Part shown: positions 1 to 31,827 of the stretch, in pieces | Layout of the letters: every line of letters begins with the position of its first letter | Numbering within the stretch: the stretch's first letter is position 1 | Made by a program: the position numbers and the translations under genes | Assembly: GCF_006345805.1 (NCBI RefSeq) | Contig: NC_042998.1 | Span: forward strand, 91,574,001 to 91,638,000 | Source: Octopus sinensis | Taxonomy: Eukaryota | DNA length: 64,000 nucleotides | Reading direction: 5' to 3' | The notes under the pieces: generated by a model | Seen by the model: only the letters and a program-made list of their open reading frames with translations | Databases searched by the model: none | What the model was told of the DNA's origin: nothing

Positions 1-2470
1 TAGTCACTGAAATTGAACAGACAGAGGTTGATATTAAACCTGAATCTAAAGAGGAAGTGGCAATCCAATTTGAGATTTCTGATAAATCTGTTGAGAAAAC
101 AGAGATTACCAGAATTGATATTGATAAACCAGAAGAAGTAGTCACTGAAATTGAAAAGACAGAGGTTGATATTAAACCTGAAACTAAAGAGGAAGTGGCT
201 ATCCAATCTGAGATTTCTGATAAACCTTTTGAGACAACAGAGATTACCAGAATTGATATTGGGAAACCAGAAGAAGTAGTCACTGAAATTGAAAAGACAG
301 AGGTTGATATTAAACCTGAAACTAAAGAGGAAGTGGCTATACAACTTGTGATTTCTGAGAAACCTGTTGAGAAAACAGAGATTACCAGTATCAATATTGG
401 TAAACCAGAAGAAGTAGTCACTAAAATTGAAAAGACAGAGGTTGATATTAAACCTGAAACTAAAGAGGAAGTGGCTGTCCAACTTGAGATTTCTGATAAA
501 CCTGTTGAGAAAACAGAGATTACCAGAATTGATATTGTTAAACCAGAAGAAGTTGTCACTGAATTTGAAAAGACAGAGGTTGATATTAAACATGAAACTA
601 AAGAGGAAGTGGCTATCCAATTTGAGATTTCTGATAAACCTGTTGAGATGACAGAGATTACCAGAATTGATATTGGTAAACCAGAAGAAGTTGTCACTGA
701 AATTGAAAAGACAGAGGTTGATATTAAACCTGAAACTAAAGAAGAAGTGGCAATCCAATTCGAGATTTCTGATAAATCTGTTGATAAAACAGAGATTACC
801 AGAATTGATATTGTTAAACCAGAAGAAGTTGTCACTGAAATTGAAAAGACAGAGGTTGATATTAAACCTGAAACTAAAGAGGAAGTGGCAATACAACTTC
901 AGATTTCCGATAAACCTGTTGAGACTACGGAGATTACCAGAATTGATATTGGTAAACCAGAAGAAGTACTTACTGAAATTGAAAAGACAGATATTGATAT
1001 TAAACCAGAATCTAAAGAGGAAGTGGCTATCGAACTTGAGATTTCTGATAAACCTTTTGAGAAAATAGAGATTACCAGAATTGATATTGGTAAACCAGAA
1101 GAAGTAGTCACTGAAATTGAAAAGACCGTCGTTGATATTAAACCTGAAACTAAAGAGGAAGTGGCTATCCAATTTGAGATTTCTGATAAACCTGTTGAGA
1201 CAACAGAGATTACCAGAATTGATATTGGTAAACCAGAAGAAGTTGTCACTGAAATTGAAAAGACAGAGGTTGATATTAAACCTGAAACAAAAGAGGAAGT
1301 GGCAATCCAATTTGAGATTTCTGATAAATCTGTTGAGAAAACAGAGATTACCAGAATTAATATTGGTAAACCAGAAGAAGTTGTCACTGAAATTGAAAAG
1401 ACAGAGGTTGATATTAAACCTGAAACTAAAGAGGAAGTTGCTATCGAAATTGTGATTTGTGATAAATCTGTTGAGAAAACAGAGATTACCAGAATTGATA
1501 TTGGTAAACTAGAAGAAGTAGTGACTGAAATTGAAAAGACAGAGTTTGATATTAAACCTGAAACTAAAGAGGAAGTGGCTATCCAACTTGAGATTTCTGA
1601 TAAACCCGTTGAGAATACAGAGATTACTAGAATCGATATTGTTAAACCAGAAGAAGTAGTCACTGAAATCGAAAAGACAGAGGTCGATATTAAACCTGAA
1701 ACTAAAGAGGAAGTGGCTATCCAACTTGAGATTTCTGATAAACCTGTTGAGAAAACAGAGATTACCAGAATTGTTATTGGTGAATCAGAAGAAGTAGTCC
1801 CTGAATTTGAGAAGAAAGATCTTGATATTAAACCTGAAGCAAAACAGGAAGTGGCTATCCAACATGAGATTTCTGATAAACCTGTTGAGACAACAGAGAT
1901 TACCAGAATTGATATTGGGAAACCAGAAGAAGTAGTCACTGAAATTGAAAAGACAAAGGTTGATATTAAACCTGAAACTAAAGAGGAAGTGTCTATCCAA
2001 TTTGAGATTTCTGATAAATCTGTTGAGAAAACAGAGATTACCAGAATTGATATTGGTAAACCAGAAGAAGTAGTCACTGAAATTGAAAAGACAGAGGTGG
2101 ATATTAAACCTGAAACTAAAGAGGAAGTGCTATCCAACTTGAGATTTCTGATAAACCTGTTGAGAAAACAGAGATTACCAGAAACGATATTGGTAAACCA
2201 GATGAAGTAGTCACTGAAATTGAAAAGACAGAGGTTGATATTAAACCTGAAACTAAAGAGGAAGTGGCTATCCAATTTGAGATTTCTGATAAACCTGTTG
2301 AGACAACAGAGATTACCAGAATTGATATTGGTAAACCAGAAGAAGTTGTCACTGAAATTGAAAAGACAGAGTTTGATATTAAACCTGAAACTAAAGAGGA
2401 AGTGGCTATGCAACTTGAGATTTCTGATAAGCCTGTTGAGGGACTTGATGTTAAATCTATTGATATTGGT
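1..2470 (+). repeat. Coding tandem array, 138-nt (46-aa) unit KPEEVVTEIEKTEVDIKPETKEEVAIQFEISDKPVEKTEITRIDIG
   Basis: Motif aaaccagaagaag recurs at 126, 264 and onward (period 138); about 18 copies. Confidence 0.97.
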
Positions 2471-3467
2471 AAACCTGAGAAAACAGTAAGTGAAATTGAA
2501 ATGCTAGTGATATCTCAAGTATCTGAAGTTGTTTCTTTTCAAGAAGATCAGATAACTACTGAGAAGAATGACATTATTACTAGAAAAGAAGAAACTGAAA
2601 TTATTCCACATATGTCTATATTTGATATTGAGCCTGAAAGTACAATTCAGATTGAAGCTAAAGAAATGGAAATTAAAGAGAAGAAACCACAAATTACTGA
2701 TATTACAACAATTTCTACTGCTGTAATGAAGGAAAAACAACCAGAAGAAGTGAAACCTGTTTCTGAAATTCAACTAACAGATATATCTGAGTCGGTAATA
2801 CCAGAGAAAGTTGAAACTGCTAAAGTTAGTTCAATTATAACTACAAGCACTGAGGAACGGAAGACTGAGATTTCTCCAGAGAAAATTAGTGATATTCCTG
2901 TGGAAATGGTATTATCAATTGACTCTAAGAACGTCACATCTGAAGATCAGGTACCAATGGTTATAAAGACTGAACAGACATATACAACAGGTGAAGAAGA
3001 AGTGCAGAAAGAAATTACAGTGGAATCACTTGAAATGCCATTACAAGACTCCATAACTCTGAAATCAGTGGAAGATTCTCTGATACAAATCCCTTTGAGT
3101 TCTACTAAATTATCTCCTACCGAGGAAGCTCTTGCTCTAGATGAAAGTGATAGTGTGGGTGAAGTTGGCAATGAAATTGAAACCTCTCCTTCGTTGACGA
3201 TGAAGGTTACAGATTCGAAAATTACTTATATTGCACCTACGCCTTCCCCTGAAAAGAAAGAAAATGTTCCAGATGAGGAATATTTGCTGCCTGAAGTGGA
3301 TATTGATGAGAAAGCTTCTGAAGAAGTTATCATATCCGAAGTCAAAGAAGAAATGCCATTTGAATTTCCCAGAATTCCACATGTACCAGATATTTTTAGT
3401 GGAGATATAAAAAGCCTTCCTGGTCCTGAAATCCTTCACTCGTTGAAAGAAGTTGTTGAAGACATAG
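1..3467 (+). CDS. Giant repeat exon A (5' end outside window): about 18 x 46-aa repeats then one diverged copy of the long unit
   Basis: ORFs 57-2210 and 2264-3529 are joined by one -1 deletion near 2128 (gaagtgctatcc vs gaagtggctatcc in other copies). Phase-1 donor GACATAG|GTATTT at 3467/3468. Confidence 0.8.
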
Positions 3468-3775
3468 GTATTTTGTGGAGTATTATCCAGGATTTCACTT
3501 ATGCTTCTACACTTGCTGCTACTGCTTGACTATACAGAAGCATATATATATATGTAGCTTACCAATGCCTTGGTAGCATGCTTCAGTTTTGTATTAAGAT
3601 GTCTTTATACGTACTTAACCAGTGTATTTGTTTTTATGTCTCTTTCAGCTCAGTAATTTGTCAATAGTTTTGTCAGGTCTCTGTAATTTCTGATAATCAA
3701 GGAGTTTAACATTGTTTTTATTAAACAGAAGATGCTTTCTTAATATTATATTGTCATGCATGTTGCTTTGCCTTC
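3468..3775 (+). promoter_or_regulatory. Conserved intronic element downstream of exon A (YGCY cluster, TGCATG, 3'ss-like tract); copy 1 of 3
   Basis: Aligns by eye with 17310-17620 and 30023-30340: cttgctgctactgct, TTTTATGTCTCTTTCAG (ends 3648), TGCATG at 3757-3762. A second shared block carries TGCATG at 4456. Confidence 0.6.
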
Positions 3776-30022: not shown

Positions 30023-30340
30023 GTATTTTGTGGACGATTATCTGGGATTTATTTTATGCTACTGCACTTGCTGCTACTGCTGCTTCTTTTTACACAAGCA
30101 TAAACTTTTGTGTAGCTTATCTATGCCTAGGTGGCATGTCGTCAATCGTCTATGTATATGTCCTTTACTGTATTTATTACCGTATTCGTTTTATGTCTCT
30201 TTCAGCTCCATCTTTGTCAAGAGTTTTGTTCAGTCTTTGTTAATTTCATTAATTAGAAAGCATAGAATTATCATTCATATAGGAAACAAATGCTTTCTTT
30301 GTAATGTTATATAGATGCATGCTGCTTTACTCAGGTATTT
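30023..30340 (+). promoter_or_regulatory. Conserved intronic element downstream of exon C; copy 3 of 3
   Basis: cttgctgctactgctgct, TTTTATGTCTCTTTCAG (ends 30205), TGCATG at 30316; second block TGCATG at 30570. Confidence 0.6.
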
Positions 30341-31827
30341 ATTATAATATTACCTATCACAAAATTTCTAATCACTTTTAATTATAGGAGATTAATATAT
30401 TTGTTTAGAACTTTAAAATCTCAATTTGCTACTTTCATATTAGAATCATTTTACAATATCCATTAATGATCAATTTTTGAATACTTATAATTTTTCTAAT
30501 GTATAGAATTGTATAGATCTGATATATTATATTAGTTCATTTTAGTTTAGAATGCTTCAATTTATGATTTGCATGTCAAATGAAGCTGTCAGACTTGCAT
30601 TTTGTGCACATCTATAAATTCATAATTTTACCATTCTCTTAGACTATGTATATATAGATGCAGTGTTGATTTTCCTAAAGGAGTTCATCAATCATAAATC
30701 CTTTTACCTTACTGGACACAGTCATTGATTCATATCTATGCTGGAGCATCATCTTCAATGACCTTAATTCATGTCGACCATACTACTTTATTAGGTAGTA
30801 CTTTTAGAGAACTGTATTGAAAAGCCAAGTTTTACATGATTTTAACCCTTTTGTAGTCTTATACACAGCAAAGTATTTACACAAGTAAATACTTAAGCAT
30901 ACACATATGCAAGCATGAAATGTATTTATACATATATGTATAAATATATATATATATATATATATATATATATATAGGGAGAATTCACAAAAAACACAAG
31001 ACAAAGACAGGTGGTGTAGAAACCAAACAGAAGTGAAAAAGTTTTTTATTTTTTGAGCCTACACTCTTCCATAGAAAGGAACACAGAAAGAAACAAGGAG
31101 AAAAATAAAGAATGTGTAGTGGCTAGCAATCTATCATGGTGAATCACACATATATATTTGTGTACGTACATGAATGTATGTATATGTGTGTATGCATGTG
31201 CTCACACACTTTGACTGATATACAAGAAGCTTCTGATATACAATAATATAATTTAACTCACAAAAGTTGGTAATCCCAATATAGAAGACACTTTCAATAT
31301 ATTCAATGTGATATGATTAAATTTAGGACTACATGATTGGACAGTGACTTCTTAATGACTAAGTCATTCTTCAACTCATATTTATAAATAAACAATTGAA
31401 TAAATATCATTGTTATTTTTATGAAATAAATTCATTCTTGAGTCTACAGGTCCATAAGTTTGGAGCTCATCTTTGTTTCTGGAGTATTTATTAAACTGAG
31501 AGTACATAATAATGAAGGGTAAGCCCACTTTATTACCAGTTTAAACTCCACTCTCAAATTGGTGGTACTCATTTTCAGCTGAATAAGCTGAAGCAACATA
31601 ATATACAAGTAGAGTACCTTTCTCAAGGACACAAATACTGCCTAGTCTGAGAATTGATCTGATGACCTTTTGATCATGAGGCCAAAATCCTAATCACTTG
31701 ACCATAGACCTTTTTTTTATTAAATAAATTTAGATAATTGTCAAATGTGTGTATCACAGATAATTTTGCCATGATTTTAAATAATTGTCTTGAACAGAAA
31801 AGTGTTAATAATCTGATAAATGAACTA

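Follow-up and report, generated by a model that had tools for sequence, protein, structure and literature searches.

In the titin-family genes of vertebrates and flies, splicing of numerous small exons tunes the elasticity of muscle, while the molecular tuning of passive elasticity in the muscles of soft-bodied cephalopods is poorly understood. The closest described arrangements are the I-band region of vertebrate titin, with its PEVK exons (~84 nt) and triplicated block of immunoglobulin (Ig) super-repeats (Ig exons, ~280 nt), in which extensible segments are encoded by tandem, in-frame and phase-symmetric exons; the triplicate region of nebulin is comparable. Here, we describe an array of at least three giant exons, or cassettes (A, B and C), on the plus strand of a 64,000-nt stretch of the Octopus sinensis genome (hereafter the window; AT-rich, with a GC fraction of ~0.3), which probably constitutes the elastic part of an octopod titin-like gene, with the cassettes acting as modular, in-frame and regulated exons. 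Exon duplication in vertebrate titin-family genes has been tied to isoform diversity by splicing (PMC12198301), the elastic exons of this family are extensively alternatively spliced by muscle type (PMC12198301, PMC8742874), and splicing of Drosophila sls is fibre-type specific (PMC8742874, PMC12198301). Tandemly duplicated elastic exons are already known from the titin family. A literature search returned no account of giant-exon cassettes in cephalopods, of the conserved intronic element that follows them or of sites resembling recursive splice sites in any mollusc and, to our knowledge, no array of giant exons, each with duplicated splice signals, has previously been described.

In comparison with vertebrate titin, the cephalopod unit is a single exon of 4.4-7.6 kb (~15 kb in Sepia), and each copy possesses its own GCAUG element and ratchet-like module, while no evidence of the RBM20 type was found. 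A second likeness is to invertebrate I-connectin, Drosophila sallimus (D-titin, kettin) and C. elegans TTN-1, in which large, disordered and charged repeats likewise adjoin tandem Ig domains within a protostome titin-like gene; we know of no paralogous giant-exon array with duplicated splice signals described for any of these. Two further resemblances, at the level of sequence, concern the splicing signals. As in Rbfox-dependent exons, two GCAUG motifs are situated within ~300 nt downstream of the donor, at a position kept in seven copies from three genera, although the exons that Rbfox typically regulates are smaller by a factor of a hundred. As at the ratchet points and recursive-splice (RS) exons of Drosophila (Ubx, kuz and Bx) and vertebrates, a strong acceptor abuts a consensus donor (Yn-CAG^GTAAGT, where ^ marks the splice boundary) at conserved sites, in company with a poorly conserved, out-of-frame cryptic exon and a weaker second donor downstream (PMC8605326). 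Unlike known ratchet introns, however, which span tens of kb, the host introns measure 5-8 kb, and the sites are placed between giant exons that are arrayed in tandem and look alternative.

Self-BLAST of the window bore out the proposal, made in an earlier note on this DNA, that blocks A, B and C are three paralogous giant exons (Table 1). All three end in ...GA(A/C/T)ATAG^GTATTT (at 3467, 17309 and 30022), the G being the first base of a Gly codon (phase 1), in agreement with the shared ...EDI-G ending that had been described; the encoded tail reads ...LPGPE..KEDIG. Each donor is followed, as had also been claimed, by the same intronic element of ~326-330 nt (A-B 82%, B-C 79% and A-C 71% identical), which occurs nowhere else in the window. 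The acceptors of B (10662) and C (25612) match (aaaacttatttgattta[c/t]attag^GTGATATGCCAGT) and the N-terminal segments behind them are homologous, with 77.5% identity, while the tails of B and C are ~62% identical and their super-repeat periods differ (1341 versus 1176 bp). The introns flanking the cassettes (A-B versus B-C) are unalignable apart from the conserved elements. The super-repeats correspond to ~392-447 aa and the short repeats to 46 aa, the 138-bp unit of the latter being present in 17.7, 5.8 and 1.9 copies in A, B and C, respectively. The distinct repeat architectures and lengths reported in the earlier note were likewise recovered (>1155, 2216 and 1470 as nt/3), as was the small exon that it had placed at 35661, a candidate of 57 nt with phase 1-1. 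By these sequence comparisons the cassettes are true paralogues, copied together with their own splice signals. The earlier note had named an assembly duplication among the findings that would overturn its proposal. That B and C represent one exon falsely duplicated in the assembly is hardly credible. Such an artefact might be suspected from the close likeness of the repeats and from the evident errors of the assembly at this locus, but the N-terminal segments, tails, unit lengths and flanking introns of B and C differ as described above, and Argonauta independently possesses at least four cassettes.

An exhaustive HMMER search over 1.84 billion representative proteins identified exactly two relatives, both cephalopod: GAB1610542.1, a hypothetical protein of 4,426 aa from Argonauta hians (51% identity), and an unnamed product of 1,135 aa from Acanthosepion (Sepia) pharaonis (30% identity). 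Cassette number, for which the earlier note had suggested a comparison across cephalopods, was found to be at least four in Argonauta (c1-c4, locus L001) and one in Sepia (locus L002). Argonauta c2 (7614 nt, 2,538 codons) and c3 (5742 nt, 1,914 codons) are intact and both 0 mod 3, and the Argonauta cassettes carry the acceptor tttgatttatattag^GT(R)A and the donor GATATAG^GTAT. The Sepia locus contains one exon of ~15.1 kb (1196-16311) composed of 12 super-repeats of 1218 nt, with the same acceptor motif, donor (TCTAG^GTATTTGG) and phase as in the window, and the exons 3' of it are collinear with three exons downstream of the octopus array (Table 1). Given the single giant exon of Sepia, one such exon is likely to be the ancestral state and the array an octopod expansion. 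At the level of the super-repeat, the window is 58-60% identical to Argonauta and 29% identical to Sepia. Cassette copies are mostly closer within species, but Argonauta c1 resembles the cassettes of the window more than it does c2 or c3. This pattern suggests turnover or concerted evolution, in place of clean one-to-one orthologues of A, B and C in Argonauta. Public annotation is faulty at L001 1-4141 and 32162-38505 and at L002 1196-16311: in Argonauta it covers two of the at least four cassettes, with a gene model that opens on an internal ATG and terminates through read-through, and in Sepia indels interrupt the giant exon, which is divided among separate 'genes', with ~9 kb unannotated. 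The c1-c2 intron of Argonauta additionally harbours an intact retroelement open reading frame of 703 codons with reverse transcriptase and PHD-finger domains (L001 7127-9235). A word-index protein search returned no match for a 688-aa cassette query or for the most conserved stretch of the super-repeat (203 aa); this same index misses the 4,426-aa Argonauta protein, which shares exact stretches of 15 residues. The index did not return an annotated orthologue either, and its matches to an Ig query were all <525 aa, so its negatives say little on giant proteins.

As assembled, none of the three cassettes has a continuous open frame (stop-to-stop frames reveal one switch in A, at least six in B and two in C), and in this respect the giant open exons of the earlier note, where the breaks had gone unnoticed, could not be confirmed. 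Alignment of the repeat units attributed the breaks to 13 private deletion events of 1-2 bases, one in A (a single base near 2130), ten in B (12 nt in sum) and two in C (single bases near 26640 and 26935), while private insertions and nonsense substitutions numbered zero among the units. The length of C is 4411 nt (1 mod 3) because of its two 1-base deletions, and 4413 nt once these are restored; that of B (6648 nt) is 0 mod 3 by coincidence, because its deletions happen to total 12. The claim that any combination of cassettes stays in frame consequently holds once the deletions are counted as errors, but fails for the sequence as assembled, with its broken frames and a C of 1 mod 3.

The substitution pattern indicates that the cassettes evolved as coding sequence. 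The ratio of non-synonymous to synonymous rates (dN/dS, or w) is 0.18-0.30 for super-repeat unit C2 against units B1-B4 (p <= 2e-5) and ~0.2 among the B units (dS up to 0.12), with p <= 4e-4 in five of six pairs; the B3-B4 pair, with five substitutions only, is not significant. For the N-terminal segments of B and C, w is 0.44. Units B3 and B4 differ by five substitutions and five indel events, a ratio of 1:1 that is unlike ordinary sequence evolution, and a majority sequence derived from all four B units (1344 nt) is free of stops. Furthermore, the less repetitive exon of 3.7 kb at 51376-55125 (frame D) is unbroken, and the homologous exon of Sepia, from a separate assembly, displays many small indels in units that are 96-99% identical. 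We infer that the 13 frame-breaking deletions are not biology but consensus errors, made where the assembly runs through near-identical repeats, because they are deletions only, without nonsense substitutions, in sequence of low dN/dS with an open consensus, and because exon D and the Argonauta cassettes are intact while Sepia shows the same type of defect. It is improbable that the breaks are real and that B, perhaps also C, is a decaying pseudo-exon that is always skipped. Such decay would account for the ten frameshifts in B and two in C as assembled, and nine non-synonymous and four synonymous fixed changes are polarised onto the B lineage; yet each deletion is private to one unit, and the constraint among B units, the open B consensus and the state of the Sepia and Argonauta exons point the other way. 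Even so, the assembly could be wrong in the number of super-repeats that it gives each cassette.

The splice sites of the cassettes are weak and are kept weak. The ~25 nt 5' of the acceptors are conserved across octopods and Sepia, with 50-60% pyrimidine and TTTGAT ~12 nt from the AG, and the seven cassette donors from the three genera (AG^GTATTT in six, GTATCT in Argonauta c1) match 6/9 consensus positions. The post-donor element is retained in 7/7 copies from the window, Argonauta and Sepia, and all seven carry GCATG at ~+108 and ~+290, save for GCACG in one Argonauta copy per site, against a background GCATG density of 0.26-0.7 per kb. Its other conserved blocks are the pyrimidine block TTTATGTCTCTTTCAG and ATGCTTT/TGCTTTGC. 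By contrast, conservation between the window and Sepia at a control Ig exon (41714-42034) ends at the exon edges, without conserved flanks. The motif (U)GCAUG is the Rbfox site, the effect of which is set by its position relative to the exon and which is enriched beside muscle-specific exons, a location downstream of the exon being the enhancer configuration (PMC8742874). With conserved (U)GCAUG within ~300 nt downstream of the donor, the cassette flanks fit the pattern of Rbfox-enhanced exons, and the combination of conserved GCAUG-bearing flanks with sites kept weak over deep divergence is typical of regulated exons.

The element itself is to be regarded as non-coding because Argonauta c2 and c3 read GGT ATT TGA past the donor, C has lost the stop of A and B, and its indels do not come in threes. 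Two coding candidates were rejected: the post-donor frame GILWSIIQDFTYASTLAATA (followed by a stop) as a conserved hydrophobic C-terminus, given that Argonauta c2 and c3 stop at once and that changes are mostly non-synonymous, and TTTATGTCTCTTTCAG^CTC... as an acceptor leading into a short coding exon, given stops in all frames and indels that are not multiples of 3. RNAalifold on the seven copies identified no conserved RNA fold in the element (-6 kcal/mol, with only the self-complementary GCAUG paired and no covariation), and a small hairpin (GCTTACCAATGCCTTGGTAGC) with an apparent compensatory change was discarded because Argonauta c2 and c3 do not preserve this change. Scans against Rfam and for tRNA genes returned no matches.

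Truncated isoforms are produced by members of the titin family, such as kettin and Novex-3, and by analogy the cassettes might act as alternative terminal exons, with read-through past the donor (..EDIGILWSIIQDFTYASTLAATA, then a stop) yielding shortened proteins and the element supplying a short C-terminus and a 3' untranslated region (UTR). A, B and Argonauta c1 do share a read-through frame of 19 codons that stops at the same place, and GCAUG also acts in 3' UTRs (PMC8742874). This alternative is nevertheless very remote, as the frame ends after two codons in Argonauta c2 and c3, the stop is missing from window C, changes between A and B across the 19 codons are nearly all non-synonymous, and the aligned post-donor element showed no conserved poly(A) signal.

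Mutually exclusive use, with one of A, B or C per transcript, was also considered with reference to the Dscam and myosin heavy chain (Mhc) clusters, which likewise consist of tandem paralogues of the same phase. While identical phases and near-identical splice-site contexts would suit such a scheme, the cassettes differ at least 1.5-fold in length, every combination is in frame, so that nonsense-mediated decay cannot enforce a choice, and the introns of 7-8 kb impose no steric block. The ATCC of U12-type introns is present in 0/7 donors, whereby that intron class was rejected. Furthermore, no selector and docking pairing of the kind found in those clusters was recovered: a search on both strands for an antisense docking partner of the post-donor element yielded nothing above noise, and there is no conserved fold. 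Mutual exclusivity is therefore decidedly improbable because nothing enforces it.

Each of the five inter-cassette introns (A-B and B-C of the window; c1-c2, c2-c3 and c3-c4 of Argonauta) contains one module of ~300-350 nt, which comprises a tract of 80-90% pyrimidine, (C/T)AG^GTAAG(T/A) and, 183-285 nt further on, an invariant AG^GTATGT. A profile built from the five copies found no further match in the window, L001 or L002 (126 kb), the last of which includes 1.2 kb of sequence 5' of the Sepia exon. The module acceptor is richer in pyrimidine than the cassette acceptors (50-60%), and a cassette donor joined to the module would regenerate TAG^GTAAGT, which matches 7-8/9 consensus positions as against 6/9 at the cassette donors. 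The putative cryptic exons between the two module sites (250 and 285 nt in the window) have stops in all frames and lengths of 1, 0, 1, 0 and 1 mod 3. A recursive splice site accompanied by a cryptic RS-exon is an architecture described in Drosophila and vertebrates (PMC8605326), and the module, which we term recursive-splice-like, shares it. On this basis, the array might be envisaged as a ratchet-driven exon selector, in which recursive splicing, in an animal that is neither insect nor vertebrate, would serve to choose combinations of multi-kb exons. In such a scheme, the weak cassette donor would first join the strong recursive site of the next intron, regenerating TAG^GUAAGU, and the regenerated donor would then choose either the weak acceptor of the next cassette or the next recursive site, such that ratchet-to-ratchet hops decide the number and identity of spring segments of 1,400-2,500 aa, with factors bound at the downstream GCAUG biasing the choice by muscle type. 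We consider this scheme speculative and rather unlikely. Octopod cassettes themselves start with GT (ag^GTGATA, GTAATT, GTGATT and GTGAAA; window 10662 and 25612, L001 9918, 22756 and 32162), while the Sepia exon starts ag^ATCAAT, showing that the GT start is not universal. The exon-exon junction TAG^GTGATA is donor-like (6-7/9) and equal in this to a real cassette donor, which makes re-splicing in the style of Ubx conceivable.

The cassettes encode a protein rich in E, I, V, T, K, S and P, with 40-52% P+E+V+K, a net charge of -13 to -15 per 100 aa and 1.5-2.4% aromatics plus Cys; in contrast to vertebrate titin, this E/I/V/T/K-rich composition is not classical PEVK. No Pfam family matches the cassette protein, and AlphaFold2 (AF2), run on one super-repeat with a cross-species alignment of nine rows, returned a mean predicted local distance difference test score (pLDDT) of 34 and a predicted template modelling score (pTM) of 0.14. 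These data are consistent with an intrinsically disordered chain resembling an entropic spring. One invariant acidic motif per super-repeat, LS(E/D)EEFF(D/E)(I/V)PS, is found from octopods to Sepia (window 11933, 13273, 14612, 26846, 28021 and 29197; L001 c1-c3; L002 every 1218 nt). It resembles the FFAT motif (EFFDAxE, set in acidic sequence), a ligand of the VAP proteins of the endoplasmic reticulum (ER). If the FFAT-like motif is real, the spring would also bear regularly spaced docking sites for the sarcoplasmic reticulum.

Further downstream, the Ig repeats at the window edge give an I-set match in Pfam (E = 5e-63, four stretches), and among solved structures they match titin I65-I70 best (3b43; E = 1.6e-70). 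The designation 'titin-like' appears reasonable for the gene because these adjoining Ig domains match the poly-Ig of the titin I-band best; no kinase or FN3 domains were identified within the window. The Ig repeats form a young tandem array (63137-64000; period of 291 bp, 2.9 copies, 91% identity). Frame D, upstream of them, contains unrelated repeats, namely a 141-bp unit in 8.7 copies ('DIPKSMVG...') and a 42-bp unit in 9.4 copies ('FQIEEEKPRDTEVA'), and its boundaries are likely to be of phase 0 (aaag^CCT and GAG^gtaaat).

The cassettes probably arose when an ancestral giant exon was tandemly duplicated as a complete splicing unit, consisting of a pyrimidine-poor TTTGAT acceptor, a phase-1 start, variable repeats, a tail, a weak phase-1 donor (AG^GUAUUU) and the ~330-nt element with its two (U)GCAUG and pyrimidine/UGCU-rich blocks. 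With the cassettes acting as modular, regulated exons, inclusion of each would be set by downstream-bound (Rbfox-type) factors, with a possible contribution of stepwise splicing through the ratchet-like sites, and the number and kind of included cassettes would determine the length of the spring. A length of 0 mod 3 with equal phase at both ends, as such modularity would entail, is found in the intact Argonauta c2 and c3, in window B and, after restoring its deletions, in C. A possible though less probable alternative is constitutive tandem exon duplication, by which all cassettes would always be included, making a longer spring, and the intronic elements would help multi-kb exons with weak sites to splice. 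Coding constraint in all copies would suit this alternative, as would the Argonauta gene model, in which c2 is joined directly to c3, and the occurrence of the post-donor element at the single Sepia exon, which shows that it is not specific to a choice among copies. Conversely, ~330-nt flanks with fixed GCAUG and weak sites in seven copies are more typical of regulated exons, the neighbouring Ig exon is without such flanks, and the elastic exons of known titin-family genes are widely alternatively spliced (PMC12198301, PMC8742874).

Several points count against the regulated use of the cassettes, which is read from genomic sequence. The GCAUG sites and conserved flanks, which also occur at the single exon of Sepia, could do no more than help giant exons with weak signals to be spliced efficiently and constitutively, and since the same features could serve efficient splicing only, regulated use is held to be probable rather than certain and constitutive inclusion keeps some weight. 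The Argonauta model links the donor of c2 to the acceptor of c3 (..DEDVKDIG^DLPDVSEITKK..), although it is a prediction only. B and C are untranslatable end to end as assembled, and the changes on the B lineage are indistinguishable from neutral, albeit in small numbers; this evidence is weak, and some relaxed constraint is possible. Regarding the modules, a cryptic exon of 183-285 nt exceeds the ~50 nt typical of Drosophila, and the host introns are below the usual size of recursively spliced introns. Finally, the alignment underlying the AF2 model is shallow at its nine rows.

The array is of interest mainly because it yields sharp and cheap predictions at the RNA level, foremost the junctions listed in Table 1. 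Cephalopods seem to use few giant exons, each copied with full and deeply conserved splicing signals, where vertebrates and flies employ many small ones, and the array may serve as a natural system for how the spliceosome defines exons of 4-15 kb, and for whether molluscs possess functional recursive splice sites. It also illustrates that present cephalopod assemblies and annotations break or omit giant exons, through the split Sepia exon, the partial Argonauta annotation and the 13 frame errors of the window.

Table 1. Features of the titin-like locus in the window and, where marked L001, in Argonauta hians (^, splice boundary; +, predicted join)
Feature	Position	Strand	Remarks
Cassette A	1-3467	+	5' end beyond window edge; donor ATAG^GTATTT after 3467
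Cassette A, internal	1-2440; 2360-3190		138-bp (46-aa) repeat x17.7; one partial super-repeat; then unique tail
Post-donor element A	3468-3795	+	GCATG at +109 and +291; pyrimidine block TTTATGTCTCTTTCAG
Module, intron A-B	8977-9330	+	ctttttgtttatttcag^GTAAGT (between 9014 and 9015), then CAG^GTATGT (between 9264 and 9265); no open frame through
Acceptor region B	10637-10661	+	cttatttgatttacattag^; 55% pyrimidine; TTTGAT branch-like motif ~12 nt from AG
Cassette B	10662-17309	+	6648 nt; donor after 17309
Cassette B, internal	10662-11002; 11003-16366; 16226-17031		Unique N-terminal segment; four ~1341-bp super-repeats; 138-bp repeats; tail
Post-donor element B	17310-17637	+	GCATG at +107 and +286
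Module, intron B-C	22076-22470	+	atttctctttacag^GTAAGA (between 22115 and 22116), then CAG^GTATGT (between 22400 and 22401)
Acceptor region C	25587-25611	+	cttatttgatttatattag^
Cassette C	25612-30022	+	4411 nt as assembled; donor after 30022
Cassette C, internal	25947-29472 (super-repeats)		N-terminal segment; three 1176-bp super-repeats; 138-bp repeat x1.9; tail
Post-donor element C	30023-30359	+	GCATG at +112 and +295
Candidate exon	35661-35717	+	57 nt, phase 1-1, aaag^TTGATG...AGAA^gtaagt; called from splice signals
Downstream exons	35977-36129; 38084-38287; 41714-42034 (Ig)	+	Collinear with Sepia exons after giant exon
Giant open frame D	51376-55125	+	1250 codons, intact; same gene; not a paralogue of A, B or C
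Tandem I-set Ig repeats	63098-64000	+	Open frame continues past window edge
Modules in Argonauta	L001 6651-6946; 21401-21687; 31323-31660
Predicted junction A to B			...GTTGAAGACATAG+GTGATATGCCAGTTGTTAG
Predicted junctions A to C and B to C			...ATAG+GTGATATGCCAGTCCATAC
Predicted junction, any cassette to next exon (35661)			...ATAG+TTGATGAGACCTCACC
Predicted junctions, cassette donor to module			...ATAG+GTAAGTTGCCCG and ...ATAG+GTAAGAAAACAC

Low-complexity sequence is present at three further places in the window. A C/T-rich stretch with CCTCC-type runs (3725-4312) lies directly past the post-donor element of A and has no counterpart at B or C, and the A-B intron contains 350 bp of (TA)n (7413-7761). 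Between the array and frame D, an imperfect (TA)n tract of 2.2 kb (44825-46978; GC ~0.17) is self-complementary and yields spurious open reading frames on both strands.

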